A DNA stretch of 64,000 bases from Eutreptiella sp. 'Long Island Sound 2002' (lineage: Eukaryota; Protista; Euglenida). Where the stretch lies: the NCBI GenBank assembly GCA_964036045.1, contig OZ038379.1:26226001-26290000 (forward strand). Reading direction: 5' to 3'. The notes beneath the pieces are model-generated. The model was not told the DNA's origin, did not search any database, and worked only from the letters and a program-made list of their open reading frames with translations. Below, piece by piece: positions 6,507-30,240 of this stretch (positions are counted from its first letter, which is position 1; each line of letters begins with the position of its first letter). Both the position numbers and the translations under genes were made by a program.

Positions 6507-6507
6507 T

Positions 6508-7704: not shown

Positions 7705-7710
7705 ATTGGA

Positions 7711-9320
<1,610 letters not shown>

Positions 9321-9347
9321 CAAAAGCAAGTGAAATTTTGTGTCCTC

Positions 9348-10060
9348 TTTGGTACCAAGGGATGAGTCATCCTTGCTGTGTTTTGCCGTTCTTGTGCTTC
9401 GTTCATTGTGCCCTTTGCTCTTAGTGCTTGGACTTGGAGTACAGGTGTACTCTTAACGGAGTTACCTTCACATTCACGCCATGTCTAATCATGGGAGCAG
9501 GACTTGCAAAAATAGTGTGGAGTGTTTGGTACAAGAGGGACGAGTAGTTCCTTGTCTTTTTTTGCCGTTTGTGTGGTTATTCTTCCGTGCCCTTTGCTCG
9601 TAGTGAGTGGACTTGGAGTACAGGTGTACTCTTAACGGAGTTACCTTCACATTCACGCCAAGTATAAGAGGGACGAGTAGTTCCTTGTCGTGTTTTGCCG
9701 TTTGTGTGCTTTGTTCTTTCGTGCCTTTTGCTCTTAGTGATTGGACTTGGAGTACAGGTGTACTCTTAACGGAGTTACCTTCACATTCACGCCATGTCTA
9801 ATCATGGGAGCAAGAGTTGGTACAAGAGGGACGAGTAGTTCTTTGCCGTGTTTTGCCGTTTGTGTGCTTTGTTCTTCTCTGCCCGTTGCTCTTAGTGTTT
9901 GGACTTGGAGTACAAGTGTACTCTTAACGGAGTTACCTTCACATTCACGCCATGTCTAATCAAAAGGCAAGAGTTGCAACAATAGGCTGGAGTTTTTGGT
10001 ACAAGAGGGACGAGTAGTTCCCTGCTGTGTTTTGCCGTTTGTGTGCTTTGTTGTTCCACG
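9348..10060 (+). repeat. Tandem array of 134-179-bp units, each a degenerate copy of the RepHel leader and start (polypyrimidine-AG, hairpin, ATG)
   Basis: Hairpins at 9443, 9622, 9756 and 9914. Unit tail CACGCCATGTCTAATCATGGGAGCAGGACTTGCAAAAAT aligns with RepHel start CGCACCATGTCAAATCGCTGGGAGCACGAGTTGCAACAAT. A fifth partial unit runs to ~10060. Confidence 0.9.
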
Positions 10061-10135
10061 GGTACCAAAAGGTGAGGTTCCGTTTGGGCTGGAGTACTAG
10101 TGGGTAGGAATGGGGCTCATTCTTTGGGAGGATAG

Positions 10136-10284
10136 GTAAGGCCCATCAACGCAAAACAAGATACTGCCATCCGGTTGGGTTTGAGGCTGTACAAGTATAG
10201 GCGTCACCAACATTATCAATGATGCTTCTACCCCCAAAGTAGTCACTTTGTTTTTTCCCAACTAATGTTTTTTCTTGCTCTCAG
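10136..10284 (+). other. Putative 5'-UTR spliceosomal intron of the RepHel gene
   Basis: Donor AG/GTAAGG at 10136, branch-like ACTAAT at 10261, pyrimidine tract and CAG acceptor at 10284 (alternative at 10287). Confidence 0.55.
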
Positions 10285-10302
10285 CAGTTGGATGTGGAGT
10301 AT

Positions 10303-10327
10303 AGGTGTACTCTTAACGGAGTTACCT
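10303..10327 (+). promoter_or_regulatory. Conserved hairpin element upstream of the RepHel ATG
   Basis: AGGTGTACTCTTAACGGAGTTACCT; 14 nt between its ...TACC and the ATG at 10341. Confidence 0.8.
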
Positions 10328-10340
10328 TTTATTTCGCACC

Positions 10341-13300
10341 ATGTCAAATCGCTGGGAGCACGAGTTGCAACAATGCTTGGACACGGACATTGACTTCCCG
10401 GTGGCCGAGTTCATCAAGCTGCATAGCAAAATCCCCCCGCCTACCATCCGTCGGCGACATGCGCAGTTGCGCGCCACGCTGATGAAGCGATTGCAAAAGC
10501 GCGCCGCACTTGGGATCCAAGCATCGACGGTGGCAAGTTTGAACACTCCTGAGTCCCAAGCTGCCAAGGGGTCTTGTGGAGGCAAGAGGAACACCGCGGA
10601 GTCCCAAGCCGACAAGGGCAAAAACAACACCGCGGAGTCGCAAGCGGCCAAGGGGTCTTGTGGAGGCCAGAAGAACACCTCGGAGTCCCAAGCCGACAAG
10701 GGCAAGAAAAACACCGCGGAGTCCCAAGCGGCAAAGGGTTCAGCTGGAGGCAAGAAGAACACCGCGGAGTCGCAAGCGGCCAAGGGGTCTTCTGGAGGCA
10801 AGAAGAACACCTCGGAGTCCCAAGCCGACAAGGGCAAGAAAAACACCGCGGAGTCCCAAGCGGCAAAGGGTTCAGCTGGAGGCAAGAAGAACACCGCGGA
10901 GTCGCAAGCGGCCAAGGGGTCTTGTGGAGGCAAGAAGAACATCTCGGAGTCCCAAGCCGACAAGGGCAAGAAAAACACCGCGGAGTCCCAAGCCATCAAG
11001 GGCAAAAAGAACACCGCGGAGTCCCAAGCGGCCAAGGGTTCCTTCGGAGGCATAAACAACACGCCAGAATCGCAACGGAATAAGGGCATCGTTGGTGGAC
11101 ACGGCAATACGCCAGAGAAGCAGCACATCAAGGCATCGGGGCGTCGTCATTGCGGGGTCGTTCGTACAGTGTCTCGGGAGTTGTTCCGTGTTAATGCATC
11201 ATCGCCGTCCAACATTTCTTTGAAGTCAGTTCGAGAGTATTGGCTTGATGGTTTGGACACTTTGTACTCACCACTTTTTGATGCACTTTGCTACCGGTGT
11301 GGTCAACTCCTTTGGGGCCCAATAGGTGGGGGACACAAGTTTACGGTTCCACGCAATACTGACGAGATACGTACACAGACTTTGTTTGGCGTGCATCCCA
11401 CCGATTTGGTTACAAGTGGGATATTTGCATTCCGCAACGAGATGTTCGCCAATTACTTGAAGTACAAAAATGCACCGTTTCCAGTTCCCCCGCGATCTCC
11501 TGCACGTAGCACAAGTCGCTTTGTGGTGTATGACACTCCTGTTTGGCACTCCGCTACACGTATGTATGCTTGCCACGTTTGTAGCAAGTATTCCGCGAAG
11601 TATGACCCCATCAACTATGGCTACACTTTGGATGGGGACATCCATTACAATATCCCCTCAAAAATTGCGGACCTCACCGAGTACCAGAAGCGACAAATTG
11701 CACTTGGGGCCCTCTACTCAAATACGCTGAAGCACGTGGATCTTCGTCACAAGCAATGGCACCATGCAATTGGTACCGTTGGTGTCGGCCGCAAGCCAAG
11801 CCAACACTACAATGCACTTTATGGTTTCATGACAATGAAAGAGGATATTTTGCGCGATTACCAAAAGCCCAAGGACAGCAAGCAAAGCAACCGTCAAATG
11901 AACCAAGCGTTGTTGCTGCTCAAAAAAATTCACCCTTTTTATTCTCGATTCTTGGCGCACTATGAGACGTTGTACCGATACTTGGAGAATGCGGCCACCA
12001 CCATGGGCACATTGACACAGCGTTCGTATGAAGACAAGTACGGGAAACGCTTGGAATACCATTTACAAGATGAGTACGTTGCTTGGGCTGTGGAGTGTGA
12101 TGCCCCTCGGAACATCATTCCGGATTTTGCTCCTCACTCGGACAAAGTGGGCTTCCTCCATCGGACACCCTTCCAGGGAGCGGGTGGGAACGTGACCACG
12201 GCCGCTCAATCGTTGGCCAATGACACTTATTTGCATTTTAACGACCCCAAGTTGGAACCGTGTGTATGGCCTGATTTGTATCCTGGGGGCGTTGGTGGAT
12301 ATACCGTAGGTTGCGGCATTGGATGTGCTGCCTACTACCGTAGTCGTTATCTTGCCTTTGATAGCCGATGGCGTCGGGACCGGTGGTGGTCCTTTTTCCA
12401 AGTGAGCAAAGAGATGAAAAACCAATTGATTTGGAATCAACAAAATTTCAAGGCTCAACGTGCGGATCGGGCAGAGGACATTACTGCAGCACATTTGAGA
12501 AGTGCAAGGAGTTCAACTGGTCCGAAACCGGCGCCAAAGAAATCTACCTCACAATCACCACACACGTCCTCGGAGTGTCCGCAAGGAAGTCAATGCACCC
12601 AGCCGAGTCAATCTTCACAATCCGCAACCCAAAGCACCCAACACCCTCCATCTAGTTCCCAATATGCAGCAACGTCAACAACACCGCCATCAACTCAAGC
12701 TACCCGTCAAGGCAAAAAGCCGCGTGCATGCTACCAGGACGGTGTAAATTCTATGAACCACAATCTGGAGCGTGAGGGGACCGATAAAGGTACGGCCGAG
12801 CTCAACCCGTATTATCGGTATGGAACTTATGTACCTTCAAAATTGGTTGGAACCCGTTCTTATTGGGCCTCGCGACATTTAGATCTTACAGCCATGAGTC
12901 GTGAACTTGGCAAAGCGGACCTTTTCATCACGTTGACCATGAATGACAACTGGGCCGATTTGCAAGCTGCTGTGCAAAAAGGGTGCCGTGCAGGAGCTGT
13001 GTGGCCTGGAGAATACCCCACAAACACAGGGCCAAACAAGCCAATCCAAGATGGCCACGATATGGAGGCTTGTGTGGCGTTTCACAAGCGGGTGGAGATA
13101 TTCAAGCGAGAGTTCTTGGCTATTGGCAAAAATGGTCCATTTGGAAAGGTGCGGGATTATTGGTTTCGATTCGAATATCAAGAGCGAGGCCGGGTGCATT
13201 TGCATGGCGTGGTATGGTGTGAAGCCAACAGCATTCCGGACGATGTGGTTTGCGCAACAATGCCCCGTGAAAGTGACGGCTTTGATCCAAAGTTCACAGC

Positions 13301-13427
13301 ATACCTACGGGATCTGTACGAGGAGTGCAACATGGTGCATCAATGCTACCCCGACAAGTGTTTCAATATTGGTCGTGGGCGTGTATGCACCAAGTGCAAG
13401 TCAGGTTATCCCTTTAGTGTGCCGTAG
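10341..13427 (+). CDS. Helitron RepHel, 5' part (SQ-rich repeat, Cys motifs, Rep motifs 1-2); ends at an in-frame TAG
   Basis: 1028-aa ORF with DLFITLTMND-x-W (Helitron Rep motif 1) and RFEYQERGRVHLHGVVW (HUH motif 2, ~13197-13205). The frame continues into the next ORF. Confidence 0.9.
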   Translation: MSNRWEHELQQCLDTDIDFPVAEFIKLHSKIPPPTIRRRHAQLRATLMKRLQKRAALGIQASTVASLNTPESQAAKGSCGGKRNTAESQADKGKNNTAESQAAKGSCGGQKNTSESQADKGKKNTAESQAAKGSAGGKKNTAESQAAKGSSGGKKNTSESQADKGKKNTAESQAAKGSAGGKKNTAESQAAKGSCGGKKNISESQADKGKKNTAESQAIKGKKNTAESQAAKGSFGGINNTPESQRNKGIVGGHGNTPEKQHIKASGRRHCGVVRTVSRELFRVNASSPSNISLKSVREYWLDGLDTLYSPLFDALCYRCGQLLWGPIGGGHKFTVPRNTDEIRTQTLFGVHPTDLVTSGIFAFRNEMFANYLKYKNAPFPVPPRSPARSTSRFVVYDTPVWHSATRMYACHVCSKYSAKYDPINYGYTLDGDIHYNIPSKIADLTEYQKRQIALGALYSNTLKHVDLRHKQWHHAIGTVGVGRKPSQHYNALYGFMTMKEDILRDYQKPKDSKQSNRQMNQALLLLKKIHPFYSRFLAHYETLYRYLENAATTMGTLTQRSYEDKYGKRLEYHLQDEYVAWAVECDAPRNIIPDFAPHSDKVGFLHRTPFQGAGGNVTTAAQSLANDTYLHFNDPKLEPCVWPDLYPGGVGGYTVGCGIGCAAYYRSRYLAFDSRWRRDRWWSFFQVSKEMKNQLIWNQQNFKAQRADRAEDITAAHLRSARSSTGPKPAPKKSTSQSPHTSSECPQGSQCTQPSQSSQSATQSTQHPPSSSQYAATSTTPPSTQATRQGKKPRACYQDGVNSMNHNLEREGTDKGTAELNPYYRYGTYVPSKLVGTRSYWASRHLDLTAMSRELGKADLFITLTMNDNWADLQAAVQKGCRAGAVWPGEYPTNTGPNKPIQDGHDMEACVAFHKRVEIFKREFLAIGKNGPFGKVRDYWFRFEYQERGRVHLHGVVWCEANSIPDDVVCATMPRESDGFDPKFTAYLRDLYEECNMVHQCYPDKCFNIGRGRVCTKCKSGYPFSVP
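10542..11123 (+). repeat. Coding minisatellite: 14 units of 36 or 48 nt (NTAESQADKGKK / NTAESQAAKGSxGGKK)
   Basis: Read from the translation; the frame is preserved throughout. Confidence 0.92.
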
Positions 13428-16400
13428 GAGAGAGAAGAATTGGATGACAGTGGAGTCCGCTTGCTTTATCGCAGATATGAAGCCGAAGATGCATGTGTTG
13501 TTCCACACAATCGCCGATTGTTGGTTCGACTCCAGTGCCACAATAATGTGCAACGGATAACATCTTTGGGTTGGGAATTATATCTCGCCAAATATCTCAC
13601 AAAGCCAGCAAAGTCATTGACCGTGCCCATCACCATCTCGCCCGATGCAAGCGATGTGGAGCGTTTGCTCAAGTTGCGTTCATTGGGACGCATGGAGAAC
13701 GGCATGATGCTCTTAGGAATCCATCAATGTCGAGGTAGCCGAGAGGTGGTATGGATTCCTACAGATCCATGGCCTAAACTAGGACGGCTCAAGCGTCGAA
13801 AGCATCTCCCAGACGAAGATACGTCCACAGACGTTTGGTATTTGGATCGCTATGACCACTATTTGGAACGCCCCATTGCTGCCATACCCATCAAGTACCC
13901 CGACTACTATCGCTATTATCGCCGAACACAACGTGAACCCGGAGACTCCACGGCTATAGCAAGCAATCCAGCAGAGGACTTTGCATATGATTCTCCTTCT
14001 AGCGATTCCGATGATGCAGTGAGCGGAGATCGTTTTCAAGCCAACGTACGCCCCGATGAGGGCAATAAACCATATTGGTGGCCATCACCACCAGAAAAGT
14101 TGGAGAAGACATTCACGGACGAGGTGGGAAAAAAGTGGATTCTGCGAAGGCGAACTGCGATCCCAAGGTGGAACTTTTACGTCCCGTATGGAGAAGATGC
14201 AGAATTGTATTTCTTGCAAAAGATATTATTGTCACAGCCGTTAACAAAAGCAGACCACGAGCGGAAATTCCTTTCATCCAACAATGTCACTGAAACATAC
14301 ATGGAGGAGTGTATTCATCGAGGATTGTTTCGTGGTTATGAGGAAGAGGCAAGAGAAACTTTAAACAATGCCCAAGCACGTGGCTATTCCGTTGAGCGTT
14401 TGCGACTTCTTGCACAAGTTCTTATGGCCGAAGAGATCATAGACTCCACCTTCCTCAATACCTACATGTCCGATTTAGATGAGCTTGAAAAGCACCGGTT
14501 TGGAGAAGATGAGCCAGCAATGGCCGAGGAAGCTGAACTGGATCCCCAATTGGCGGAGGAGTTAAGGGCATTCATGGATGCTGACGACACGCGTGCAGCA
14601 GAGGCACTTGTGAATGCTTTGAACCAAGGGCAACGCCGGGTATTTGACATTTTTATTGCACATTTTCAACGGCAACCTCTTGAGAATGGTCCGGATATTT
14701 CCCCGCATTGCCGCACATCAAGTGGAAGTAGTGTTGCGCAATTGTGTGCTGTTCTCACAGGGGTTGCGGGAACCGGCAAGTCTTATGTCGTTCGCTTGCT
14801 AATTGCCAAGTTAAGAGCGCTTGGTTTCAGCATCCTAGTTTGTGGTTCTAGTGGGGTAGCCGCCCTAAATGTTGGAGGACGCACAATCCACAGCCTGTTC
14901 TCATTATCTTTGGACTTGGAGTGGCAAATAAAGGAAGGCACAACCTTGTGGTGGATGATTCGAACTGCCGATGTGATTATTGTCGATGAGTTCTCCCTCT
15001 TATCACACAAGCTCCTTCACACGCTCCATGATGTGCTACACAAGGTACGCCGCGACAAGCGCAATCCTTTTGGTGGCATTACAGTGCTCCTCGTAGGTGA
15101 TCCATTGCAACTACCCGCTGTTGATTTGGATATCTTTGACAGTGCACTCTTTCGAAACCATTTTGTTCCGTTTGTGCTGACGGACGTAATGCGCCAAGAC
15201 GATGCACATTTCATTAATTTGCTTAATCGTGTGCGGATTGGAGAGGAGAGTGACGAGGACCACTTAATTCCGCAGCAACGCATAGCGCTAAATTCCGATG
15301 TGTCACTACAAGACTTGGAGGATGCCCCCATGTTGGTTGGCCGTAGAAATGCTATGAACCGATGGAATGAACATTTCATGGCTCAATTGGGGTCAAGCAT
15401 TGTTACGTTCGATGCTAGCTACGTTGATATGGGTGGTGCCCCTACCAATCAAGCAATGTGCGACTATATCAATTCTCGCAATCGTCGTGTGCTGCCTCAG
15501 CAAGTGTGTGTCGCAGCGGGCATGAGGGCACGACTTATTCGCAATGTGTCCATCGAAAATCGACTCGTTAACTCGACACTTGTTGTGATCAAAAGATGGT
15601 CGAATGATGTCATTGTGGTAAGCCCGGTGGGGCACGCAAGGGAGTACCCCATCTGCCGTTTCCAGCAAATAATTCCGGTGTACGGCCCGTCCGTGCAAGT
15701 CAAAATAATCCAATTCCCTATGCTTCCCGGATACTCATGTACCGTGCACGGTACGCAGGGCTGCTCTTACGACCGCGTATGGGTGGACATGGCAGCTTTC
15801 TTTGCCGCAGCACACGCATATGTTGCTTTATCACGCGCACGTTCACTTCAAGGCCTATTCATCCTCAATTACCGTCGTGACGCTTTCCTTGTTGATCCGT
15901 ATTACGTGCAATTATGGGATTGGTTCGTGGCCACAAACGTGTTGTCTCCCAAACCACCCAGCCAAATCCCTCCTTATCCACGAAGAACATTTACAACATC
16001 ACTCATAATTGGAATTATGTGTGTCCATCGTGCTTGGAGTGTCGTAAGTCAACTCCCACAGCGGTTAGATGCTCGGATATTGAAGGTCAACATGCTCCAC
16101 ATTATCCAATATGTGTCATTTCCATACTGGTCGTATATTGAGAGACAATTGCGTGGAGACAAGCTGTCTTTGGACATTGATGATCTAAACGAGGATGGAA
16201 CGGAGCAAATCCGCAAACAAGGACGACCGGTTGGTGCTACAGGGCAACCGGCACAAGGCTTCAAACTATTGGACGCGTGTAATAACCCACGAGTGTTTGC
16301 GGCCCAAGACTTGGCTCAAATGTCGGTTGTGCAATTGCGGACATTGTGTGCTGCACATAAGCTATCAACTTCTGGAACCAAAGCCCAGTTTCAAGAACGC

Positions 16401-17924
16401 ATCCTACAAAAGCAAAACCACATTCAACCTCCATCATCTACACCAGCGCCTACACATTCACAAGGACCTGTACGACTGGTGCCGTCATCCATCAATGATT
16501 TCCCCCATTTGCAGCCACGACTTAATTACTTTGGAGAGGATTTTTGGCCACAAGAAAGAAGCGATACCACGGAGAACAATGTGCACTTATTGGAGAGTGC
16601 ATGGTTGTCTTGCGCAGCAGTGCAATGCTTACTAGAGGTCTTGTTGCCACAGGGCAATTCCTCGGTTAAGCCGGTCATCCAAGATGTGACATTGGCAGTA
16701 ATAATGCAACATCCTCCGACGTCGCGGGTTGTGTATACTCTGGGAGATGCCCTACCCGTACTACTCACCTCGCAGCACTCCACCGTTGGAGTTCACTACG
16801 TGTTGGTCACGGACATTTCCATTGTAGACAAGACCTTGGTTGTCCACGATCCTAAAGATAACGCATCTACCTGTGGCGCATGGTTCCGGGCAATTATGAG
16901 TAAAATGGGATGGTCTCTTACATGGCATCATTATGGAACTCAACCCGATTCCGATACATGTGGCTTCCGAGTCGTCATGCTCGCCATGCAATGGTGTCAG
17001 ACCAATCGACTCACCGGGCAACTGCCACGGTGGTTCTCGACGTATTGTGCAAGCGTTCTCCAGCTTTTTGCCGACGATACGAGGAGCTTGCGTTCTACGG
17101 TGAATACGTTTCAAGATTGGGCATATGAAGATGCTTTGAGAGAGTATGATGAACCAGTGGACTGGGCAATGACGGAGGGTGGGCCGCTTCCTACCGTCAC
17201 CAACAGCGACATGGAAGCTGCAATTCGCAACCCTCAATCCAATTCAGCAAGTGGTCCGTCTTCAACGTCCAAAGCGCCGCAGCCTCCGCATCCGTCAACC
17301 CGTAGGAAGAGTGGGACAAGTAAAGGGACTACGGGGGCAAACCCACAAACCACACCGGCACAGACCACTCCTACAAGAAAAATTCCAAAGTCAAAAAAGA
17401 CAAATATGCCTCCACGTACCCGAACTTGTGAGCCACCACCCTACCAATCGCACCGTCAACCACATCCCAAGAGTGGACACGAGGCCGACCAAAGTTCTCG
17501 CAAACATTCCTCAAAGAAGCGGTCATCCAACTCCGAGTCCGGGCCAAGGTCCAAGAAGAGTCGACCAGAGGACCACGAGCAGTCAAATACTAGACGCAAG
17601 AGATCCACTTCGAGCCGTCCTTCCGAATCAACAAGCCAAGAGCCGCCAACAGCAAAACAACGGCAAGAAAAAGCTCCGGTAAATCATGCTACACTATCCG
17701 AGAACGAGATCAAGAAGTGGTTAATCCTTATCACGGACGAAAATTTAAGTCGACGAAAACGCCGCGAGCATGCTTTGCACTTCTTGGGAGCCGCAGATAG
17801 TACCCTGGTAACATTACAGTACCGCACTCTCAGTCTCCAACTGCATCCCGACAAAAACCCGTCGGATGCACTAGCAAAGCAACGATTCCAAGTTCTTGGG
17901 TGTGCAAGAGACATGTTCCGTTAG
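13428..17924 (+). CDS. Helitron RepHel, 3' part: Rep motif 3, PIF1 helicase, SAP, Ulp1/C48-like protease, C-terminal J domain (10341-17924 = 2527 codons if fused)
   Basis: YLAKYLTK (catalytic Tyr motif, ~13581), GVAGTGKS, IIVDEFSLL, FGGITVLLVGDPLQLPAV, LTDVMRQ, TVHGTQG, YVALSRARSLQGL. SAP-like MSVVQLRTLCAAHKLSTSGTKAQFQERIL. Protease-like HYVLV...D...QPDSDTCG. J-domain YRTLSLQLHPDKNP...AKQRFQVL. Confidence 0.9.
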   Translation, partial: EREELDDSGVRLLYRRYEAEDACVVPHNRRLLVRLQCHNNVQRITSLGWELYLAKYLTKPAKSLTVPITISPDASDVERLLKLRSLGRMENGMMLLGIHQCRGSREVVWIPTDPWPKLGRLKRRKHLPDEDTSTDVWYLDRYDHYLERPIAAIPIKYPDYYRYYRRTQREPGDSTAIASNPAEDFAYDSPSSDSDDAVSGDRFQANVRPDEGNKPYWWPSPPEKLEKTFTDEVGKKWILRRRTAIPRWNFYVPYGEDAELYFLQKILLSQPLTKADHERKFLSSNNVTETYMEECIHRGLFRGYEEEARETLNNAQARGYSVERLRLLAQVLMAEEIIDSTFLNTYMSDLDELEKHRFGEDEPAMAEEAELDPQLAEELRAFMDADDTRAAEALVNALNQGQRRVFDIFIAHFQRQPLENGPDISPHCRTSSGSSVAQLCAVLTGVAGTGKSYVVRLLIAKLRALGFSILVCGSSGVAALNVGGRTIHSLFSLSLDLEWQIKEGTTLWWMIRTADVIIVDEFSLLSHKLLHTLHDVLHKVRRDKRNPFGGITVLLVGDPLQLPAVDLDIFDSALFRNHFVPFVLTDVMRQDDAHFINLLNRVRIGEESDEDHLIPQQRIALNSDVSLQDLEDAPMLVGRRNAMNRWNEHFMAQLGSSIVTFDASYVDMGGAPTNQAMCDYINSRNRRVLPQQVCVAAGMRARLIRNVSIENRLVNSTLVVIKRWSNDVIVVSPVGHAREYPICRFQQIIPVYGPSVQVKIIQFPMLPGYSCTVHGTQGCSYDRVWVDMAAFFAAAHAYVALSRARSLQGLFILNYRRDAFLVDPYYVQLWDWFVATNVLSPKPPSQIPPYPRRTFTTSLIIGIMCVHRAWSVVSQLPQRLDARILKVNMLHIIQYVSFPYWSYIERQLRGDKLSLDIDDLNEDGTEQIRKQGRPVGATGQPAQGFKLLDACNNPRVFAAQDLAQMSVVQLRTLCAAHKLSTSGTKAQFQERILQKQNHIQPPSSTPAPTHSQGPVRLVPSSINDFPHLQPRLNYFGEDFWPQERSDTTENNVHLLESAWLSCAAVQCLLEVLLPQGNSSVKPVIQDVTLAVIMQHPPTSRVVYTLGDALPVLLTSQHSTVGVHYVLVTDISIVDKTLVVHDPKDNASTCGAWFRAIMSKMGWSLTWHHYGTQPDSDTCGFRVVMLAMQWCQTNRLTGQLPRWFSTYCASVLQLFADDTRSLRSTVNTFQDWAYEDALREYDEPVDWAMTEGGPLPTVTNSDMEAAIRNPQSNSASGPSSTSKAPQPPHPSTRRKSGTSKGTTGANPQTTPAQTTPTRKIPKSKKTNMPPRTRTCEPPPYQSHRQPHPKSGHEADQSSRKHSSKKRSSNSESGPRSKKSRPEDHEQSNTRRKRSTSSRPSESTSQEPPTAKQRQEKAPVNHATLSENEIKKWLILITDENLSRRKRREHALHFLGAADSTLVTLQYRTLSLQLHPDKNPSDALAKQRFQVLGCARDMFR

Positions 17925-18158
17925 CTAACAAGTTGCCATACATGAGGCATTGTCTTTATATTATTTCTTCCAAACTCGCTAATGCTCCTTGTATGGCGCC
18001 CACCAACACGGAAAACTTCTTTTGCATGTATTACACATTTGTTTCATTCTTGCGTGCAATTGCGTGTCCTCTAAAATTGTAATTTTAATTAGCATTCAAA
18101 AGGTACGATTAACAGACTTGCAATCAATTCCGCTACATTGCAAATTTGACAAACCTAC

Positions 18159-19260
18159 GTACAATTAGTGCACGACGTAGGTTGCAGGTGTACTCTTAGC
18201 GGAGTTACCTTCACTTATTAGTACACAACGCAGGATGCAGGTGTACTCTTAACGGAGTTACCTTCTCTTAGTTGCAACAGAACTACGAGTCAAGGTGTCC
18301 TTTTCACGGAGTTCCCTTCATTTACAAGCAGCAAGCGTACAAAGCACTCATCCACGTTGTGCGCGCACCTTCAATTGTTGCCAACGGTTTGTTAGAATCC
18401 TCTCACACAAGGGGTGATGCATCTTCTAAAACATACGGAAAACATTTTGGTAGCAAAGCGGGTGTACTCTTAACGGAGTTACCTTCAATTATTTTCATCC
18501 ATTTGCCAATCCACAAAAGCAGGGTACAATTAGTGCACGACATACAATGCAGGTGTACTCTTAACGGAGTTACCTTCACTTATCAACAAACGACGTAAGA
18601 TGCAGGTGTACTCTTAACGGAGTTACCTTCTCTTATTTGCAACAAAAGTACAAGTCAAGGTGTACTCTGCACGGAGTTACCTTCATTTACTTGCAATAAC
18701 CGTCAAAGCAGTCATCCACGTTGTGCGCGCGCCTTCTATTGTTGATAACGGTTTGTTACAATACCCTCAAACAAAGGGAGATCCATTTTCTAAAAAAAAC
18801 GGTGAACATTTCGGTAGCAAGGTGGGTGTACTCTAAACGGGGTTACCTCCCCTTATTTTCGTCTATTTCCAACCATCTCATTTGCCAATCCATACAAGCA
18901 GGGTACAATTAGTGCAAGAGGTAGGATGCAGGTGTACTCTTAACGGAGTTACCTTCACTTATAAGTACACGACGTACAATGCACGTGTACTCTTAACGGA
19001 GCTACCTTCACTTACTTGCAGCAAGAGCACTCGTTTCCATCACTTACGTTTATGTTTCAAACTTGCGTGCCTTGCATCATGATGCATCATGACTCGGATG
19101 GAAGCCGCCCTAAAATTTTGTCCGTGGTGTGCAAATGACAAAAAGGGACAGGGTTGCCATTCATGCACCACTACTCCGAGGCTATGTTCTAGTACGACTA
19201 TCTAAATCTCACACATTGCCGTCCCCTCTTTCTAGGTGTATTCTTAACGGAATTACCTGC
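18159..19260 (+). repeat. Intergenic hairpin array (11 copies; 53/54-nt sub-period inside a ~365-379-nt higher-order repeat)
   Basis: Motif starts at 18186, 18239, 18293, 18460, 18551, 18604, 18658, 18824, 18930, 18983 and 19234. Confidence 0.92.
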
Positions 19261-19269
19261 ACTTCAATA

Positions 19270-20091: not shown

Positions 20092-20374
20092 TGTGCTTCC
20101 TTGATGCAATTGAATGCCTAATTCAATACATGTGTGCGACATGTCGTGCCACACTATATTATTCGTGCACTGCCGCCGCAATTGTGCAGTCGAATATGCA
20201 TTTCTTCCATACTTGAATGGTCCAAGAGCCTCCAACTTCATCAGATGATGATGCGTGTAGCGCTTCTCAATAGGCGAACATCAACATTCACGTGCTTCGT
20301 CCCTTTGCACATTTCACACAACAGTTCGGCCGCATGAGAGGTTCCGTTGCAGCTAGTTTTATCTTTGAATTTGT

Positions 20375-22398: not shown

Positions 22399-22570
22399 TT
22401 GCCACGCACATTGTGGTTCCATGCACTTACATGAATGATTTGCAAATGAAAGGGTGAAATTGGATTTGCTATGATTTTACCACAGTTAAGAGCTAAAGGG
22501 TTCCATATTCCGATTAATTAGAATCCGCAACACCGATCCGCAACAACAGCTCGAATATTTCAATTAACAC

Positions 22571-23045
22571 ACCACATCCATCCACGAGAGTGGATGTGGT
22601 GGGCGAAGCAGGCACCCGCTAGAGGGCTAGTAGCTTCACAGTGTCATAAGTGGACCTATCTCGTAGCGGAGAATTGCCTTCCGCGGGCCATCGCCACAAC
22701 GGCCGTCGAAATATGTCGACAGGGTTTCGGTGAACGCACGAAAGGAGGAACGCCGGCCGCCTCCCCCTCTACTTCAGAGGGCCGGCTTTTCTTCACACTG
22801 GGCTCCGAAACGACGGACCCAGCGCTCTGTTGGTCAGTGGGCCCGCACACAGAGCGCTCGGTACGTCGTTTCGGGGCCCTGCGCTCTGTTTGTCAGTGGC
22901 CTTGTTCGCAAGTGACAACAGAAAAATTCCTCCATGGGCGCATGGAGGGGGCCATTACCCACAACGAGGGCCCGGTGAGACTCGTTGTATGGGAGTTATT
23001 GTCCATGCGGCGATGGCAACAGGGTAAGTCCGCTCGCTACGGAAG
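22571..23045 (+). ncRNA. Unassigned highly structured GC-rich segment (structured RNA or single-strand DNA origin)
   Basis: At least 7 consecutive stems, including ACCACATCCA/TGGATGTGGT (22571-22600) and a ~29-bp interrupted stem (22800-22879). No credible ORF. Strand assumed from G-U wobbles and gene orientation. Confidence 0.5.
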
Positions 23046-23169
23046 AAACACCAAAATTTGTTGCCATTGCTTTTTGGATAATAACTAATGTTTACTTGAC
23101 TACCTTGCAAAAAAAGTACATACAAACAGTCGTACACAACGTTGTGCGCGTGCCTCGAGAAAACTTACA

Positions 23170-23823
23170 GTAACATCTCGTTTACAAAGCAGTTGTACTC
23201 GTAACGGGGTTACCTTCACTTATTTTTCATATCATTTCAGACCATCCATGGCAAAGAAAATAGATATACAAACACAATCACTCAAAAAAATGGTAATCCA
23301 TTTTCCAAATCGTAAAGTGAACATTGCGTTATGACAGCAGGTGTACTCTTAACGGAGTTACCTTCAATAACTTTCCATGTCATTTCAAACCGTTCCTCAT
23401 GAACCACGTTGTGCTTCCATCTTTTCCCTCACTTCATTCATGCTCGACTTCCATGGCACCCGTCAAGGTGTACCCTTAACGGGGTTACCTTCAACAACAA
23501 GGGTGACGTTCCATTTAATGAAGCAAACACTCGTATCACTTGCCACCCGCATTTTTATTTGCTTGCACAGGGGGCATGATTCACTGATGATTCAACGACA
23601 CTTCCTCCATTATCTAAAGCAAAAACTGGAATCATTTGCTACTTCCGAAAGCCTGCAACTTCGCCGCATGATGTTGTATGTAGAGTCAACGTTCACTTGC
23701 ATTGACCAATTGCTATAAAAATACGATGAGACATTTCACACATGAATTCCACCACATCAAAATTGGCGTGTCAAATGTTCGTATCATTTGCCACGCACAG
23801 GTGTACTCTTAACGGAGTTACCT
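23170..23823 (+). repeat. Third, more diverged hairpin cluster upstream of the helicase gene
   Basis: Motifs at 23191, 23339, 23466 and 23799. Flanks such as ATCCATTTTC...GTGAACATT are homologous to the 18.2-19.0-kb higher-order repeat. Confidence 0.85.
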
Positions 23824-23836
23824 TCTCTATTACAAA

Positions 23837-26800
23837 ATGCATCCTGCAAATTCGTTCACATTGGCCAAGGTTCAGTCACTACAAGAAGCAGCAATGACGG
23901 CTACGCTTATTATGGCCAAGGAAAACACAGCAAAGCAAGAATTGACCTTCACGGGCGAGTTCAAAGGTTCGTCAACATGGATCACGACATGGGGCCGCTT
24001 CGAATTCGCCGAAGATGACCACATCCGTCTACATCCAGAACCACATTGCCAAGGCCAAGTGCCTTACGAAGGAAAGATCACAACAACATCTGACGATGTT
24101 GCACATGTGACGGTGGACAACGTGTGGGGCATCCCAACGGGGTTATACAGTTTGGAATACGTCCCGGACATGATGCCTGCCGAGTGGGTCAAAGGTGCGC
24201 TAGAATTTTCACCTGAGCCTTAGCATACATTGCAAGTGTTGGCGTCAGGAAGCAATAACAAGCCACTCAACCCCATATCCGAAGACACCATCCAAGCCGT
24301 TGCAGCAGATCTCAAATTGGAACCGTCCCAATGTTTCGCCCTACAGACCGCCATGCGTTCAAAGGTGTGGGCATCCCAACTCCTCATATGCTCCCCAACA
24401 ATGCTCTCCAGCATATCAATTCCTGTTCGTTTCGCGTATTACAACCATTACTATACCCGGTTAAATAATCAAGGCGTCCCCGAATTCCATGCCATTCTCA
24501 ATCTCCTACTCATTCCCTATGTGTTGCAGGTGACTGCCATAATGGGGCCCGCCGGTTGCGGTAAATCCCATGTTTCCTTGGCCATCATGCAAGCGCGTTT
24601 CCTTGCAGCGCAACGCGTGTTGGTCACAGGTCCTACGAACACTTTGGTGGACAATTTGTGCGATGCCTGGGCGACAACCAGCGGTCTCACCGGTCCAGCA
24701 ATCGTTCGATTGTACTCCAAGATTCAACACGATTCCGGAAAAGCAAATGAACTGTACTGTGCCCATGCACTCGCCGTAAGATACCAATTGACAGTGAAGG
24801 AAGTGTTGCACAACGCAACCTTCGTATTCGCAACTAACGCCCTTGCCTTGTCACCCTCTCTACAGGGCGATTTTCACCACCACATTGTTGATGAAGCCGG
24901 ACGCACCAATATCCCTATGGGCATAGCGCTCACAGCATGTGCAAAAAACATCACCTTCATTGGTGATTCAAATCAGTTACATCCCCACACAAACCTTGAA
25001 AAGCATTACGCAAATGAGCTTGAATTAACAACAGAGGACATGTCACGCCTCATCGATGACAGCAAAATAAGCATCTTGCATATGTGTGCAGCAGGTTTGG
25101 TTCCACATGCATGCATCATAGAGCAACATAGGATGAACAAGCGCTTGACGGATTTCATCAATACATTTTTTTGCGGACTTATGGTCGGTTCGGGAGGAGG
25201 ACAAGAGCCCTCTTACACACTGCCAAACAAATCATGCATCAAACTTATCGACACATCAGCCAATGCTGCATTCGTCCCAGTCGATGAACTTTTCAATCTT
25301 ACCTGTTCCGCATTCCAACCTCGTGTTGCCACTTCCGCGTTTTCGAGTATTGCAGCTCGCCACGTGAATGACGTCTTGCATTACGCACAGAACGATTGGC
25401 CAAAAGGCAGTGTTGCTATCATTAGCAATCACTACGAGCAAAATCGCTTGAACAAAGCGCTATTTTCTTCCCATGAGTCCGTGTCCGCCATTGACACTTT
25501 AGGTAGGTTCCAGGGAAGTCAAGCCGATGTCGTCATACTAACCTTGGCTTCCATTCATCCAGGTTTCTTTACCGAAACCACACGACAGTATGTCGCTAGT
25601 TCGCGCGCGCGTCAAGCATTGATCATTATTGGTGAGATCGCGAAATGGAAAGCGCATCAACAGATTCGCCCACTATTTGAGGCCTTGGAGGCAATGCAAC
25701 AAAACGCTTCATTGCCCACCACCCGCGTACACACACTTGCGGCCTTGCCCAAATTCGTGGACAACGCATGTTCCAACGATTGGGTCGTTTGTCGATGGTC
25801 TCCCATGAACGATTGCTGTATGCACGGAACCCTCTATCATGACACCATCATGTCGTCCATTCAAGCATCCCTTCACAATCATTTCAATTCATACTTCACG
25901 GTGAAATTCGGACGCATCCTTCTGCCCGACTGTAGCTGGTTGTTTACCAATATATTGGCCTTTCCTGTACCCGATGTTCCACAATACCAGTCCCTTATTG
26001 ACAGCATGGATGCTGCAGTCTTTCACAATGTAGAATGTCGCCAACTATATGACTGGGAGAGGGAGATTCTACGGGAGATCCCACGAAACTTCCGCAAGAC
26101 TCTCACCCGTCAAAATAAGCGTTACACACTTACAGTACAGTTGGTCCAAGCTCTGTACCACAATTTCTTCACCAAATGCCGTTCCGCATTCCACCATAAT
26201 CTCCTCACTCATTTATACGGATTGCTTCCGCAGCATGGTACATGTGATCAAACCACCCACACCCATGGCTCAAACATCTCTTCCACCATTTGCACTTGGT
26301 GCCATGTGCTTCCAACACCATCACTGTCAAGCCAAATCACAGGCTACAATGCCCCACAAGTGCAGGCCGACCTCATTCACACCTTCATTACAGACGTGGC
26401 CGCAGATGTAACATACTTTGAGCCAACAAAGATTGCCGTGGGATGTCCTTTACAATTTTTCAAGATGGCAAGGGAATTTCTTCCGTTTACCAAATGGCAA
26501 ATGAACGATGATAAGGATCATCGAGGCTTCCCCGGTGGTGGCCGTAGTGTGCAAACAACCCCTCAAATTGCGAAGCTCTTTACACAACTTAACCTGCAAT
26601 CGGGTAATGCCATTTTTCGCAATGTTTTCAATGACACAACTGCAAGTGCAAAGCCTCACATCGATTCTGATTGTTTCCAACGCAATAGGACTTTCCTATG
26701 GCACTTTGGACCTCCTAGCTACCTACGCTGGGGAAATTCGAAGTACCCACTGGAACACGCTGCATTGTATGCTTTTGATGCTGCATGCACTCATTCCGTC

Positions 26801-26845
26801 CCGTTGATGGGTCGTTATAGTTTGTCTATTCGCTCGTGGAACTAA
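23837..26845 (+). CDS. UPF1/DNA2-type SF1 helicase fused to a C-terminal AlkB-like 2OG-Fe(II) oxygenase (1002 codons, one in-frame TAG at 24221-24223)
   Basis: ORFs 23837-24223 and 24230-26845 share one frame. Helicase motifs MGPAGCGKS, VLVTGPTNTLVDNL, IVDEAG, IGDSNQL, EQHRM, FQGSQAD, YVASSRARQAL. C-terminus RNVF...PHID...THSVP...RYSLSIR matches the AlkB N...HxD...H...RxSxxxR pattern. Confidence 0.8.
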
Positions 26846-26932
26846 GCGTCCATGGCATGCACGATGGTGTTGTTGTCCTCGCTTTGGTGGTCGCAGTGAA
26901 CCAACAAGCAACATATTATTGTCGGCTACATG

Positions 26933-27331
26933 CGGTGGTGGCCGTATTGTGCAAATAACCCCTCAAATGGCGAAGCTCTTTACACAACTTCACCTGCAGT
27001 CAGGTAATGCCTTTTTTCGCATTGTTTTCAATGACACAACTGCACGTGCGAAGCCTCACATCGATTTCGATTGTTTCCAACGCAATAGGACTTTCCTATG
27101 GCACTTTGGACCTCCTAGCTACCTACGCCGGGGAAATTCAAAGTACCCACTGAAACACGCTGCATTGTATGCTTTTGATGCTGCATGCACTCATTCCGTC
27201 CCGTTGATGGGTCGTTATAGTTTGTCTATTCGCTCGTGGAACTAAGCGTCCATGGCATGCACGATGGTGTTGTTGTCCTCGCTTTGGTGGTGACAGTGAA
27301 CCAACAAGCAACATATATTGTCGGCTACATG
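26933..27331 (+). pseudogene. 400-bp tandem duplicate of the AlkB-domain 3' end and 3' flank (copy 1 = 26533-26932)
   Basis: ORF 26919-27245 repeats GGGR...RYSLSIRSWN with a few substitutions; offset is 400 nt. Confidence 0.9.
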
Positions 27332-28251
27332 ACAAATCATATGGAGCACATTATATCTCGGGTTGCACGACCCATCAACACTGAGTCAATGCATGACACA
27401 ATCAGAGAATTTTTGCATGCCGCCGTGCGGTGCCTCTTTTCGCTTGCGTGCTACTCAGTGGCCTTTGCAATATTGTTTTCTACATTTCCCAACAATGGTG
27501 TCCCTTGACCGGCATAGCAACCATCAATTCAATCAAACCAATCCTTTGGCGACATCATTGCCAAATTCCATCACTCACTCACTCACATATATGTGCCATA
27601 GTATGCTGCAGTAAGCTTCCGGGAGCAAGTGCACTCTTATCAATGTTATCTTCCCTTCAAAATGACCTCACACATTCGATCGTGACAATGACCAGCACAC
27701 CCCTCCTAACTTGCAAGCAATCTTGACTTCCATCATACATGACAATTTGTTCCGATAAACAATCCGTCCAGGGGTGATCAATTGTTTGATTCATCACTAT
27801 ATAATCAATGCCCCGCACCAAAAAAACGTTGCACCATTACCCAATACACAAGTACGATGCTTTTCCACCCATCAAGCCCAAAGCTTTCGCCACAATTGGT
27901 CATCGACGCCGCTTTCATTGCCATGATGCGACATGATTCCACAAACAATGGTACTATGCACCATTCAACAAATTCCCAAAAGAATCATAAAGGGTAGGCG
28001 TACAAATCCGTCACTATAACCTCCATGATGCGATCCAAGTCAACATACCAATTTCACATGCAAGTGAAGTCTCCTGCACGTCACGTCAAAACAACACCCT
28101 AGCCACCGTTTCCATGCGGTACACTCCAAGTTTTACAAAGGGTCCATTGACCAAATTGTTTCACGGCCTATTGCACCATCCATACACGTCAGCCAAGCCC
28201 ATCTTCCAGCCACAACAGGAATTTCAAGCAACCACTTCCTTTCATCAGTCC

Positions 28252-28453
28252 CAGGATGCTCAAATTAGGGCGTGAAGTCATCAACGCCTTCACTCCATTG
28301 CATTTCGCATTCATTTGTCTTGCTAGGTGTATTCTTAACGGAATTATCATCTCAGGATGCTCAAATTAGGGCGTGAAGTCATCAACGCCTTCACTCCATT
28401 GCATTTCGCATTCATTCGTCTTCCTAGGTGTATTCTTAACGGAATTACCGTCA
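28252..28453 (+). repeat. 101-bp tandem duplication containing the hairpin (28325, 28426) upstream of the F-box gene
   Basis: CAGGATGCTCAAATTAGGG... begins at both 28252 and 28353. Confidence 0.92.
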
Positions 28454-28462
28454 CTACAAAAT

Positions 28463-29707
28463 ATGGACAATACTTCAACCTACGGCGAGCCAAGCAACTA
28501 TCACCCACAATGTATGCCCTGCGTCAAGAACACACAAAATCGTCAAATGAAACGCAATATCAAGATTGCCATGGTCACGACGCCAACATCATTGCGAGAT
28601 TTCCCGAAGGATCTCATGTTGCTAATCGCAGAGTACGCACAGCAAATAACCTCACTCAGCAAGTTGTGCAAAAGCATGTGGATAATGCTCCATGGTTCGC
28701 GCATCATGAACACCGACGCATGGAATTGGGTGACGAAGGATTTCAAACGTATGATTAATGTGCGTCACCTCATGGCTCACTTCAACGACAATACGTTCGC
28801 CTCACTCATTGCGGCAAAGGAATATATTGACAACCTCAACTCCGGTTTCTTCGTCGGTTTGTGCGATCTAATGTTGTGGAGCGATATATCCGGACCATAT
28901 GCAAGCACTGCAATACGGGCAATTAACACAACATTGCGCTCCTCATCACGTACACTGCACACCCTAAATTTATCCTGCTACATGCCGTCCTTGTGCGCCT
29001 CGGTCATGGCAGAGAACCTATTGAATTGCACATCTCTCACAACTTTGGCTCTGAGTTTGCGCATCGCAAAAAATGAAGACGGGTTGGTAACTTTTATGGA
29101 CGATAACACATCTAATCGCCTCTTGAAAGACGTTTTCTGTAAAGGCATGCATATGCTTAATTTCCTCCACCTCGATCTCTCCTCTGGGTCCATCACAAAT
29201 AGTGGTGCATGCGCGTTGGCAAATGAATTGTGCAACGCGCAAACACTTACCCACATGCATCTGGACCTAGGTTACAACCATATAGGTCCACTTGGGGTGG
29301 CCTCTTTATTTCGTTTGATGGGACAATATAAAAAGCTGCAAAGTTTCTATTTGAACGTCTGTGCAAATCAGAAGTGGGGGACCCAAAATGAATTGGCCAA
29401 ACCCTTTTACATCCGAGAACTTGCAACCACTTTGTGTTCCATTCAACTGGATTTCCAAGACATTGGTCTTGTTGACCATAGTGTGATTGACCTCGTCAAC
29501 ACCTTGGTTAACAAATGGAATCCGCAAGTGTTGCAACAAAGCAACACATCCGCACTGCTTTAGCTAAATCTTCTCTACAATTATAATATTGATATGGCGG
29601 GGGTTTGTGCATTGCAAGTGCTAGTAGACCACTTTGCCGTTGACGTGCATACAACAATTTCATGTGATGCATTCGATTCACCCCATTTGTACAGCGACGA
29701 CGACTAG
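28463..29707 (+). CDS. F-box + RI-like LRR protein (TAG at 29561-29563; frame and LRR pattern continue to TAG 29705-29707)
   Basis: F-box-like LRDFPKDLMLLIAEY...LSKLCKSMW. LRRs FLHLDLSSGSITNSGACAL and MHLDLGYNHIGPLGVASL, and after the TAG LNLLYNYNIDMAGVCAL. The ATG is 13 nt after the hairpin. Confidence 0.75.
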
Positions 29708-29823
29708 GTCCTTCGTCGGCAATTCTATGCAATTTAAAGCCAGTTCCCTTCAATTCCAAACTTTTGTAGTAGCAAAGTGTTCCAACCAGTTCAGGTTGCC
29801 ATCCGTGGGAGTTCCCAATGCAA

Positions 29824-29900
29824 TGGTGTACTGCTAACGGAATTACCATCACCTTCATGCCATGTCTAAACCTTGGGAGGAAGGGTTACAACTGTTTCTT
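29824..29900 (+). other. Terminal hairpin followed by a diverged second RepHel start (MSKPWEEGLQLFL), truncated
   Basis: TGGTGTACTGCTAACGGAATTACC + ATCACCTTCATGCCATGTCTAA resembles the left-array tail TTCACATTCACGCCATGTCTAA. The peptide aligns with RepHel MSNRWEHELQQCL. Confidence 0.6.
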
Positions 29901-30110
29901 GCAATGATTACCACGAGACTCGCAAGTAATTCCTTCACGTGTTTTGCCAACTGTGCTTCGTTCCTCCAACACTGCCACGCGGTTACGGTAGATTGCGGTT
30001 TGATGGACATACGTACGGACGGGCTCTTTCTGAGCGGATATAAATTCCCATTAGCCTTCCCCTCCACCTTGTGCACAACTCCCACATAAAGAACCCGCGT
30101 GTCTTTTAGG

Positions 30111-30240
<130 letters not shown>

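Follow-up and report, generated by a model that had tools for sequence, protein, structure and literature searches.

Can a Helitron hold a set of genes of its own, each of them behind the same signal? Helitrons are usually viewed as a single transposase gene with captured debris, and the question is raised by a locus in a 64,000-nucleotide stretch of the euglenid Eutreptiella sp. 'Long Island Sound 2002' (contig OZ038379.1, positions 26,226,001 to 26,290,000; hereafter the window, or locus L006, contig ctg10835_38x_l of ENA assembly ERZ25074135, from which the sister loci were also drawn). An earlier note on this DNA had proposed a 20-kb Helitron at 9325-29900 that carries accessory genes under one common leader hairpin. 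We consider it probable that ~8202-30131 is one now-inactive copy of a multi-copy, autonomous-type Helitron of ~22 kb, of the Helitron2/Helentron (HLE2) type. Its transposase gene, RepHel, and four further genes lie on the + strand between 10.3 and 29.6 kb, co-oriented as the note had said.

The ends of the element and its copies

Where does this element begin and end? At least seven copies on different contigs share a common 3' terminus and have differing flanks. We sorted the copies into subfamily 1 (the window, two copies in L001, L007 and L008) and subfamily 2 (L005 and L009), in which RepHel is ~72% identical at the nucleotide level to that of subfamily 1. L007 and L008, on other contigs, match the window collinearly (97-98% identity) from RepHel as far as 30233, a stretch that takes in the two GRF genes, the helicase gene, a 400-nt duplication and the leucine-rich repeat (LRR) gene; beyond 30233 the flanks diverge. 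The same 3' end is found in four subfamily-1 copies, each on a different contig. In L001, a deletion derivative fuses window position 14255 to 28203 and retains the LRR gene and the 3' terminus, and a second copy stands head to tail behind it. The 3' end shared by L007, L008 and the L001 derivative thus places the cargo inside the true termini. In ERZ25074135, two RepHel N-terminal types form 90%-identity protein clusters of 202 and 268 members, and two helicase types form such clusters of 47 and 62.

In all copies the 3' terminus reads GAGAGGGGTGTAGATTAGAGGA, followed by (TA)n of variable length. Subfamilies 1 and 2 and the satellite-only elements all have this terminal 22-mer without a single change, and the adjoining interior differs; both subfamilies also have a subterminal hairpin, CCCCTC/GAGGGG, at ~50 nt from the 3' end. 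An intact 5' end, TTACTACACCCCTCTCCCCTTAAATCTAGCT, is present in L001, L004 and L005 directly behind a 3' terminus and a short (TA)n. It is an inverted repeat of the 3' end (TTACTACACCCCTCTCCCC pairs with GGAGAGGGGTGTAG-ATTAGAGGA) and is followed by an (AAC/AAGC)n microsatellite and then by a 162-nt satellite. In the window copy the 5' terminal inverted repeat is rearranged, with no direct-orientation copy present. The microsatellite and satellite block at 8202-9344, which is also found in satellite-only non-autonomous relatives with the same termini, runs directly into the RepHel leader of three copies, the one in the window and the two in L001 (85-95% identity), and the element therefore starts near 8202 and not at 9325. 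The earlier note was thus right to see one Helitron here and drew it too short, the right end being at 30131.

No direct repeat surrounds the copies beyond (TA)n, which would mask any target-site duplication, and the copies abut (TA)n runs or other family members. The (TA)n at 30132-30233 may represent the target of insertion, or else a palindromic tail that belongs to the element. From left to right the features are:

8051-8075, - strand: fragment of the 5' terminal inverted repeat, isolated within (AT)n (reverse complement of ATTACTACACCCCTCTCCCCTT)
8202-9344, + strand: 5' non-coding part, (AAC/AAGC)n microsatellite and 162-nt satellite array (Tandem Repeats Finder)
9345-10340, + strand: leader region, four tandem 134-179-nt repeats with a hairpin in each (repeat and motif scans)
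10341-17924, + strand: RepHel, 2,527 codons (Pfam)
10551-11062, + strand: coding 36/48-nt tandem repeats of RepHel, peptide NTAESQAAKGSxGGKK (translation)
~12822-13214, + strand: Rep/HUH domain with HLH motif (Pfam, translation)
13425-13427, + strand: in-frame TAG in RepHel (CAG in both L001 copies)
~14736-15860, + strand: PIF1 helicase domain (Pfam)
16308-16409, + strand: SAP domain (Pfam)
~16767-17010, + strand: H..D..Q..C block in RepHel, possibly Ulp1-like (motif conservation only)
17793-17912, + strand: J domain with HPD (Pfam)
17925-19269, + strand: intergenic array, ~12 hairpin copies in ~365-nt repeat units (repeat and motif scans)
19270-20091, + strand: GRF-like zinc-finger gene, copy 1, 273 aa (weak Pfam match, homologues of 45-60% identity at the corresponding place in L005 and L009)
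20092-22125, + strand: second half of a 2,034-nt tandem duplication, with hairpin array and GRF-like copy 2 (also in L007 and L008)
21304-22125, + strand: GRF-like gene, copy 2 (98% identical to copy 1)
22126-23836, + strand: spacer with leader-like repeats and four hairpins, at 23193, 23341, 23468 and 23801 (repeat and motif scans)
23837-26845, + strand: gene for a superfamily 1 (SF1, Upf1-like) helicase fused to a predicted AlkB-fold 2-oxoglutarate (2OG)/Fe(II) dioxygenase, 1,002 codons (Pfam AAA_11/AAA_12, AlphaFold2 and Foldseek)
23837-24220, + strand: conserved N-terminal domain of the helicase gene (copy comparison)
24221-24223, + strand: in-frame TAG in the helicase gene (GAG in L007 and L008)
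~24530-25640, + strand: helicase motifs (Pfam)
~26282-26842, + strand: AlkB-like domain (structure model)
26533-27332, + strand: 400-nt tandem duplication of the 3' end of the helicase-AlkB gene (also in L007 and L008)
28249-28450, + strand: 101-nt tandem duplication with the leader hairpins of the LRR gene (repeat and motif scans)
28463-29563, + strand: LRR gene, 366 aa, RNI-type repeats (LRR_6, E 3e-4)
29796-29871, + strand: decayed duplicate of the RepHel leader near the 3' end, hairpin 29826-29847 and pseudo-start (repeat family comparison)
30058-30131, + strand: 3' end, subterminal hairpin CCCCTC ... GAGGGG and terminus at 30110-30131 (copy comparison, fold)
30132-30233, no strand: (TA)n adjoining the 3' terminus, of variable length among copies (copy comparison)

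The surroundings hold further members of the family. A satellite-only non-autonomous relative with 162-nt repeats lies at 6455-7715 and ends in GAGTTGG/GAGAGGGGTGTAGATTGGAGGA and (TA)n. Such relatives occur in both orientations across most of the loci examined, so that the Helitron family appears to seed satellite arrays. A near-perfect long palindrome at 7690-7915 (GGGAGAGGGGTGTAGATTGG, ~190 nt of (AT)n, CCAATCTACACCCCTCTCCC) joins a pair of Helitron 3' termini, tail to tail, across an AT microsatellite; the (AT)n tract as a whole covers 7713-8200 (~490 nt). Behind the right-end (TA)n, positions 30234-30250 read TAACGCCAAT, of which the same 10 nt are found behind (AT)n at 7880; this may be the remnant of an opposite-strand terminus or a piece of a common target repeat. 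Further out, window 1-6000 has 58% G+C, an AT skew down to -0.31 and a GC skew of about -0.14, and its open reading frames (ORFs) have no Pfam match; ten flanking ORFs searched against Pfam gave LRRs only. An 85-nt satellite (Tandem Repeats Finder unit) in the host flank at 58658-58943 is ~65-76% identical to L005:4747-8150, the long tandem array that fills the spacer between RepHel and GRF in the subfamily-2 element.

A hairpin in front of each gene

What do the five genes have in common? A scan of the window with the 22-mer GTGTACTCTTAACGGAGTTACC, allowing up to 3 mismatches, returned 30 matches, all on the + strand and all within 9445-29847, and none in dinucleotide-preserving shuffles; the core observation of the earlier note is therefore real and far beyond chance. 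In front of all five genes the motif ends 12-14 nt 5' of the ATG (RepHel at 10341, the GRF genes at 19270 and 21304, the helicase gene at 23837 and the LRR gene at 28463), so that the common leader hairpin stood up as described. The true RepHel leader has its hairpin at 10305-10326, and the last copy of the array at 17925-19269 (19236-19257) ends 12 nt before the first GRF gene. In fact, wherever a gene leader was examined, in either subfamily, the gene begins with the first ATG 3' of the hairpin; the distance of 12-14 nt holds throughout subfamily 1 and for both RepHel leaders.

The motif is part of a 27-nt imperfect hairpin (consensus AGGTGTACTCTTAACGGAGTTACCT), built of a 4-bp stem, an internal loop (GT/T), a second 4-bp stem and a TTAACG loop. 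In RNAfold, leader stretches of 50-51 nt gave about -8 to -14 kcal/mol in four of the five gene leaders, and the LRR leader folded no better than shuffles; its hairpins, at 28327 and 28428, are a covarying variant, GTGTATTC...GAATTACC. Across 28 distinct copies from both subfamilies 92% of cells were paired, against 29-58% in slid controls. Two-sided changes affect four of the eight pairs (C-G to U-A, U-A to C-G, G-C to C-G and A-U to U-A), and none of 500 shuffles reached the covariation score. Some of these changes were inherited by duplicated copies, and they thus amount to about three or four independent events. When a covariance model was run over 258 kb (window plus loci), it found 106 matches, all on the sense strand of element copies, and none in the flanks or in L002, L011 and L012, three loci with distant relatives of the element's proteins (see below). 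Between subfamilies the 30-nt hairpin window is identical at 23-28 of 30 positions, whereas the 100 nt upstream are at shuffle level.

A pseudo-start, ATGTCTAATC, is kept in three of the four leader repeats at 9345-10340, and the decayed duplicate at 29796-29871, 280 nt from the 3' end, has a pseudo-start that reads MSKPWEEGLQ as compared with MSNRWEHELQ in RepHel. In many array copies at 18184-18957 and 20608-21016, ATGCAG precedes the hairpin and makes a mini-ORF, ATG CAG GTG TAC TCT TAA (MQVYS*), whose end falls within the loop of the hairpin; this could be a coincidence.

Could the hairpin be a processing signal instead? A tiny intron (GT...TTAAC...AG) was ruled out, since no AG stands between the hairpin and the ATG in the copies next to genes. 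An acceptor for splicing or trans-splicing, with an AG just 5', is conceivable; the AG beside the hairpin belongs to the stem, and C-G replaces G-C in one copy. A search for relics of the dinoflagellate spliced leader returned nothing, as did an Rfam scan of the whole window, and the exact motif had no match in viral contigs or JGI metagenomes.

The genes, their conservation and their decay

Has the element merely picked up these genes? L005 and L009 have the same order and orientation as the window: RepHel with its SAP and J domains, hairpin, GRF homologue, helicase N-terminal domain, helicase-AlkB. Amino-acid identity between subfamilies is 45-52% for GRF, 38% for the helicase N-terminal domain and 45% over 870 residues for helicase-AlkB, and intact helicase-AlkB ORFs of 984 and 986 aa are found across both subfamilies. 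The proportion of synonymous differences (pS) is saturated at 0.72-0.85, and that of nonsynonymous differences (pN) is 0.33-0.45 in the cargo and 0.07-0.12 in the Rep and helicase cores. Within subfamily 1 the pairwise ratio of nonsynonymous to synonymous rates (dN/dS) is 0.2-0.6 for all genes, from small counts that include neutral decay after insertion. Because the order was kept across saturated synonymous divergence, we regard the cargo as ancestral and selected and not as random capture. The LRR gene stands apart: it is present in L001, L007 and L008 and absent from L005 and L009, and its distribution suggests that it was presumably acquired later than the other cargo. Gene order and hairpins are thus conserved among copies for RepHel, GRF and helicase-AlkB, and for the LRR gene in subfamily 1 only.

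RepHel shows the fusion of HUH-Rep and Pif1-type helicase that is typical of Helitron-like elements, as the earlier note had read it. In the window it is split into two in-frame ORFs, 10341-13427 and 13440-17924. Pfam finds Helitron_like_N in the first (E 3.2e-25) and, in the second, PIF1 (E 3.1e-28), SAP (31.6 bits) and the DnaJ domain that had been predicted (27.3 bits, with the HPD motif); precomputed Pfam matches include the J domain too. The Ulp1-like protease of the note has fared less well: the block GVHYVLV...HDxK...GTQxDxDxCGFR, with its H/D/Q/C residues, is conserved down to 38% identity and has no match in Pfam or PDB searches. The number of N-terminal repeats differs between copies through in-frame indels of 12 and 36 nt. 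A distant RepHel, 53-56% identical, is encoded in L002 (ENA ERZ27251166 k141_798597, 8.3 kb) as a single uninterrupted 2,420-aa ORF with a J domain; this locus is without the hairpin motif and has a ~120-nt tandem repeat behind RepHel.

In the product of the helicase gene Pfam recognises the SF1 helicase, and sequence-only searches (Pfam, PDB profile searches, hhalign) do not recover the AlkB identity of the C-terminus; distant homologues of this domain had no match in Pfam either. In hhalign against E. coli AlkB only H...RYxLTxR aligned, without significance. Across 13 sequences, PH(V/I)D...H...GRYSLSxRSW is conserved, which contains the HxD...H iron triad and the 2OG-binding RxxxxxR and corresponds to HxD...H...RYNLTFR of E. 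coli AlkB. AlphaFold2 on the last 187 residues, with this 13-sequence alignment, gave a model with a predicted local distance difference test score (pLDDT) of 73.6 and a predicted template-modelling score (pTM) of 0.72; an attempt on the 387-aa C-terminal half with 6 sequences was unusable (pLDDT 30). Among the best 50 Foldseek matches of the model in the PDB almost all are AlkB-family proteins, the one exception being the Streptomyces enzyme BelL. ALKBH2 comes first (E 2.9e-5, probability 1.0, TM 0.53), followed by ALKBH3, E. coli AlkB, ALKBH5 and ALKBH7. The structure prediction thus confirms an AlkB-family 2OG/Fe(II) dioxygenase fold at the C-terminus, and with it the helicase-AlkB gene of the earlier note.

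Outside ERZ25074135, word-based searches over 5.8 billion proteins turned up nothing closely related to the helicase-AlkB or GRF proteins. An exhaustive HMMER search with the C-terminal region gave 24 relatives, mostly fragmentary. L012, from a different sample (ENA ERZ28668945 NODE_64640, 2.5 kb), encodes a fusion of SF1 helicase and AlkB-like domain at 32% identity, so the fusion predates the two subfamilies. In L011:10001-11077 (ERZ25074135 ctg9549_36x_l) we found a stand-alone 358-aa homologue of the middle and AlkB-like region, 35% identical, with no helicase, hairpin or Helitron terminus nearby and with ClpC-like and FKBP genes 3-8 kb away; candidates for its origin are a host paralogue, a domesticated copy and an old fragment. 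The ClpC-like gene, a nuclear one, is no more than a hint that the host is a eukaryote with plastids. A profile scan of JGI metagenomes with the helicase region retrieved three unrelated SF1 helicases (TARA and other samples), without RepHel or AlkB.

There are two GRF-like genes, as the note had said, and they are 98% identical. Each would encode two Cys-rich GRF-like ribbons and a conserved C-terminal domain, according to copy 1, and the cysteines are conserved between subfamilies. The Pfam match to Zn_ribbon_GRF (PF06839; E 0.0037, 17.8 bits) is below the cut-off of 25.9, and an alignment with NEIL3, over its tandem GRF fingers, has an E of 3.5. The HSP20 part of that claim found no echo in Pfam (E up to 5), in PDB profiles or in hhalign against IbpA/IbpB. 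With phmmer and hmmsearch, the AlkB-like, Ulp1-like and GRF/HSP20 regions had no informative match among PDB sequences. For the LRR gene the repeats hold (LRR_6, and E 4e-5 against PDB LRR proteins), and the N-terminus has a motif that resembles an F-box, in which Pfam detects no F-box at E up to 5.

Minus-strand ORFs of 188 and 102 aa lie opposite the GRF genes (19675-20241 and 21709-22275), and the gene caller of the assembly chose the 188-aa antisense ORF over the GRF gene in several copies; they are probably an artefact of codon composition. In the spacer, the ORFs 22594-23088 and 23377-23718 have no Pfam match and no homologue in subfamily 2, the second reads through a hairpin, and they are probably not genes. 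The 400-nt duplication behind the helicase gene gives rise to an extra ORF, 26919-27245.

The earlier note had described the coding regions as unbroken. In fact the window copy is dead, with one nonsense mutation in RepHel and one in the helicase gene, and its decay is slight. The TAG in RepHel separates the HUH motif (HLH) from the catalytic YLAKY tyrosine motif just downstream. The other copies examined have their RepHel, their first GRF copy or their LRR gene interrupted by frameshifts or stops.

What the module may do, and how it compares

How would such an element work? We propose that it moves by rolling-circle transposition, driven by the HUH-Rep and Pif1 helicase, between inverted-repeat termini that adjoin (TA)n, and that the accessory genes have been kept beside RepHel under purifying selection over a long period. 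GRF fingers of APE2 and NEIL3 bind single-stranded DNA; AlkB enzymes remove 1-methyladenine and 3-methylcytosine, lesions that arise mainly in single strands, and ALKBH3 has the ASCC3 helicase as its partner; J domains bring in Hsp70, for example in polyomavirus T antigen. From these established family functions, the GRF-type protein would probably bind single-stranded DNA, the helicase-AlkB demethylase would probably reverse alkylation of the exposed single strand, or of RNA, and the SAP and J domains of RepHel would probably tether DNA and recruit Hsp70. Plausibly, then, protection and repair of the single-stranded intermediate, and remodelling of the transposition complex, would be the tasks of the module. 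The earlier note went further, to a virus-like programme and an anti-silencing toolkit that removes host factors, an extrapolation of its own; the element has no capsid or packaging gene.

The hairpin would most likely be a gene-start or leader signal, at the promoter or 5' untranslated region (UTR) level, for a common, element-specific gene expression. We rank this function first because of the position of the hairpin relative to start codons and its conservation before unrelated genes. The shared cis-element would then point to co-regulation, and it may act as RNA, as single-stranded DNA or as duplex DNA. A bolder extension, which we think less likely than not, is that the hairpin is an element-specific expression code, in which the same structured leader turns on each gene and is possibly read by a protein of the element itself. 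If true, this would be a eukaryotic transposon with virus-like, self-contained gene regulation.

Several observations weigh against the reading of a maintained, co-expressed module. Roughly one hairpin in two belongs to the tandem arrays in front of the GRF genes and is not directly followed by a gene, an arrangement that fits a role as promoter or enhancer, or on single-stranded DNA, better than a role in the 5' UTR, and in two subfamily-2 genes the spacing between hairpin and ATG is 34 and ~70 nt. L004 is 94% identical to L005 and lacks L005 4492-13854; such a cargo-less deletion derivative indicates that the cargo is not needed in cis. The GRF homologues of L005 and L009 are pseudogenes, and every copy examined carries at least one disabling lesion, with no intact RepHel among them. 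As to function and class, the HSP20, Ulp1 and F-box calls come from motif reading without tool support, and Pfam does not detect DUF6570 in RepHel.

Does the hairpin act on DNA rather than on expression? It could serve the single-stranded transposition intermediate, its location before genes being secondary: RepHel or GRF might bind or load there, for instance to shield, fold or mark the displaced + strand, or the hairpin might cause pausing or termination inside the element. Every copy lies on the transposed (sense) strand, covariation of the stem suits any single-stranded form, and the arrays reach 12 copies without an ORF behind. Imperfect hairpins are known targets of HUH enzymes of the IS200/IS605 and Helitron type, GRF fingers have the affinity for single strands noted above, and the 5' arm GGTGTA resembles the terminal motif GGGTGTAG. 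However, the true termini are without the hairpin motif, and in three derivatives the breakpoints of internal deletions (14255/28203, 12300/16068 and L005 4492/13854) do not map to hairpins. A purely DNA-level role also leaves the first-ATG rule and the 12-14 nt spacing of five leaders unexplained. We therefore think it unlikely that this is the function in place of gene expression and rank it second, the two roles being compatible.

Finally, the idea that the cargo consists of ordinary Helitron captures without a role in the element, with a hairpin that is a short repeat spread by duplication of the RepHel leader, can draw on known gene capture by Helitrons (PMC11417382, PMC5148889), on the LRR gene of one subfamily, the cargo-less L004, the many hairpins in tandem duplications, the stand-alone homologue near host genes in the same genome (L011) and the frequent lesions in cargo copies, but we find it very improbable, given that the order and frames of GRF and helicase-AlkB are kept at 40-53% amino-acid identity with pN well below pS, that both genes are intron-less and without close homologue elsewhere among 5.8 billion proteins, that the hairpin is near-identical amid randomised flanks and has compensatory changes, and that L004 is a simple deletion of a cargo-bearing form.

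The locus and its relatives show that a Helitron2-type element can hold a stable multi-gene accessory module over long evolutionary time, with each gene marked by one conserved, structurally constrained hairpin. It offers testable ideas on what rolling-circle transposition needs in vivo (single-strand protection, alkylation repair, chaperone recruitment) and a defined cis-element whose mutation should show how a DNA transposon coordinates several genes. Accessory proteins of this kind are too divergent for Pfam, and Pfam-based surveys will thus miss such families.

How does this element compare with known systems? The HLE2 group is known for asymmetric terminal inverted repeats and terminal hairpins (PMC13085455, PMC5148889) and for internal micro- and minisatellites with satellite-only non-autonomous partners (PMC5148889, PMC4067079, PMC13085455), so that the termini, hairpin, satellites and non-autonomous partners described here are hallmarks of the HLE2 type. 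The nearest named RepHel relatives, at 26-30% identity, all have HLE2 markers (OTU, Herpes_teg_N, EN, UCH, DUF6570), of which DUF6570 marks the HLE2 clade (PMC11417382). In place of the 5'-TC ... CTRR-3' termini of canonical Helitrons (HLE1), which insert into AT, the element has inverted repeats ending ...GATTAGAGGA, and its copies abut (TA)n or family members, whereas HLE2 elements insert between T and T, or between T and T/C. Pfam detects neither AP endonuclease (Exo_endo_phos), a mark of Helentrons sensu stricto, nor OTU in RepHel.

The closest known relatives in architecture are thus Helitron2/Helentron elements, such as FoHeli of Fusarium oxysporum and the DINE-1/Helentrons of Drosophila. 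They share the HUH-Rep and Pif1 RepHel, the short asymmetric terminal inverted repeats, the 3' subterminal hairpin, internal microsatellites or tandem repeats, satellite-only partners and head-to-tail arrays. They differ in size (~5-11 kb, against about 22 kb here) and in adjoining a TT site and not (TA)n; the RepHel described here has SAP and J domains and no detected AP endonuclease, OTU or DUF6570, and it is accompanied by three or four extra complete genes, each with the common hairpin.

The earlier note had taken for granted that Helitrons carry only random host fragments. This premise does not hold: in the HELIANO survey of 2024, Helitron-like elements stably contain 2OG-FeII_Oxy_2, HSP20, Peptidase_C48, UCH, OTU and RPA domains, and 2OG-FeII_Oxy_2 and HSP20 are nearly confined to HLE2 (PMC11417382). 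In these HLE2 families an AlkB-type 2OG oxygenase is a separate ORF 3' of RepHel, in a position conserved within families, and the list also names HSP20 and C48, two of the calls that found no tool support here. The survey is a bulk listing of Pfam domains, without a helicase-AlkB fusion, a GRF gene, a J or SAP fusion or a shared cis-element, whereas in our element Pfam does not detect AlkB, HSP20 or C48 domains. In the part of the Helitron literature that we covered, we found no helicase-AlkB fusion, GRF gene, or J or SAP fusion.

Further afield, ASCC3-ALKBH3 and the AlkB domain of plant flexivirus replicases likewise combine a helicase with an AlkB-family demethylase that acts on single-stranded nucleic acid; here the two would be one SF1 (Upf1-like) polypeptide on a DNA transposon, with no detectable sequence similarity to known AlkB proteins. 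Polyomavirus large T antigen also joins a replication initiator-helicase to a J domain with HPD. This is an analogy only, given that the lineages are unrelated (HUH-Rep and SF1B Pif1 as opposed to an SF3 helicase) and that the J domain is C-terminal here. Thus, stable accessory-domain cargo in HLE2 elements is known, and the shared hairpin, the multi-gene layout and the helicase-AlkB fusion are new.

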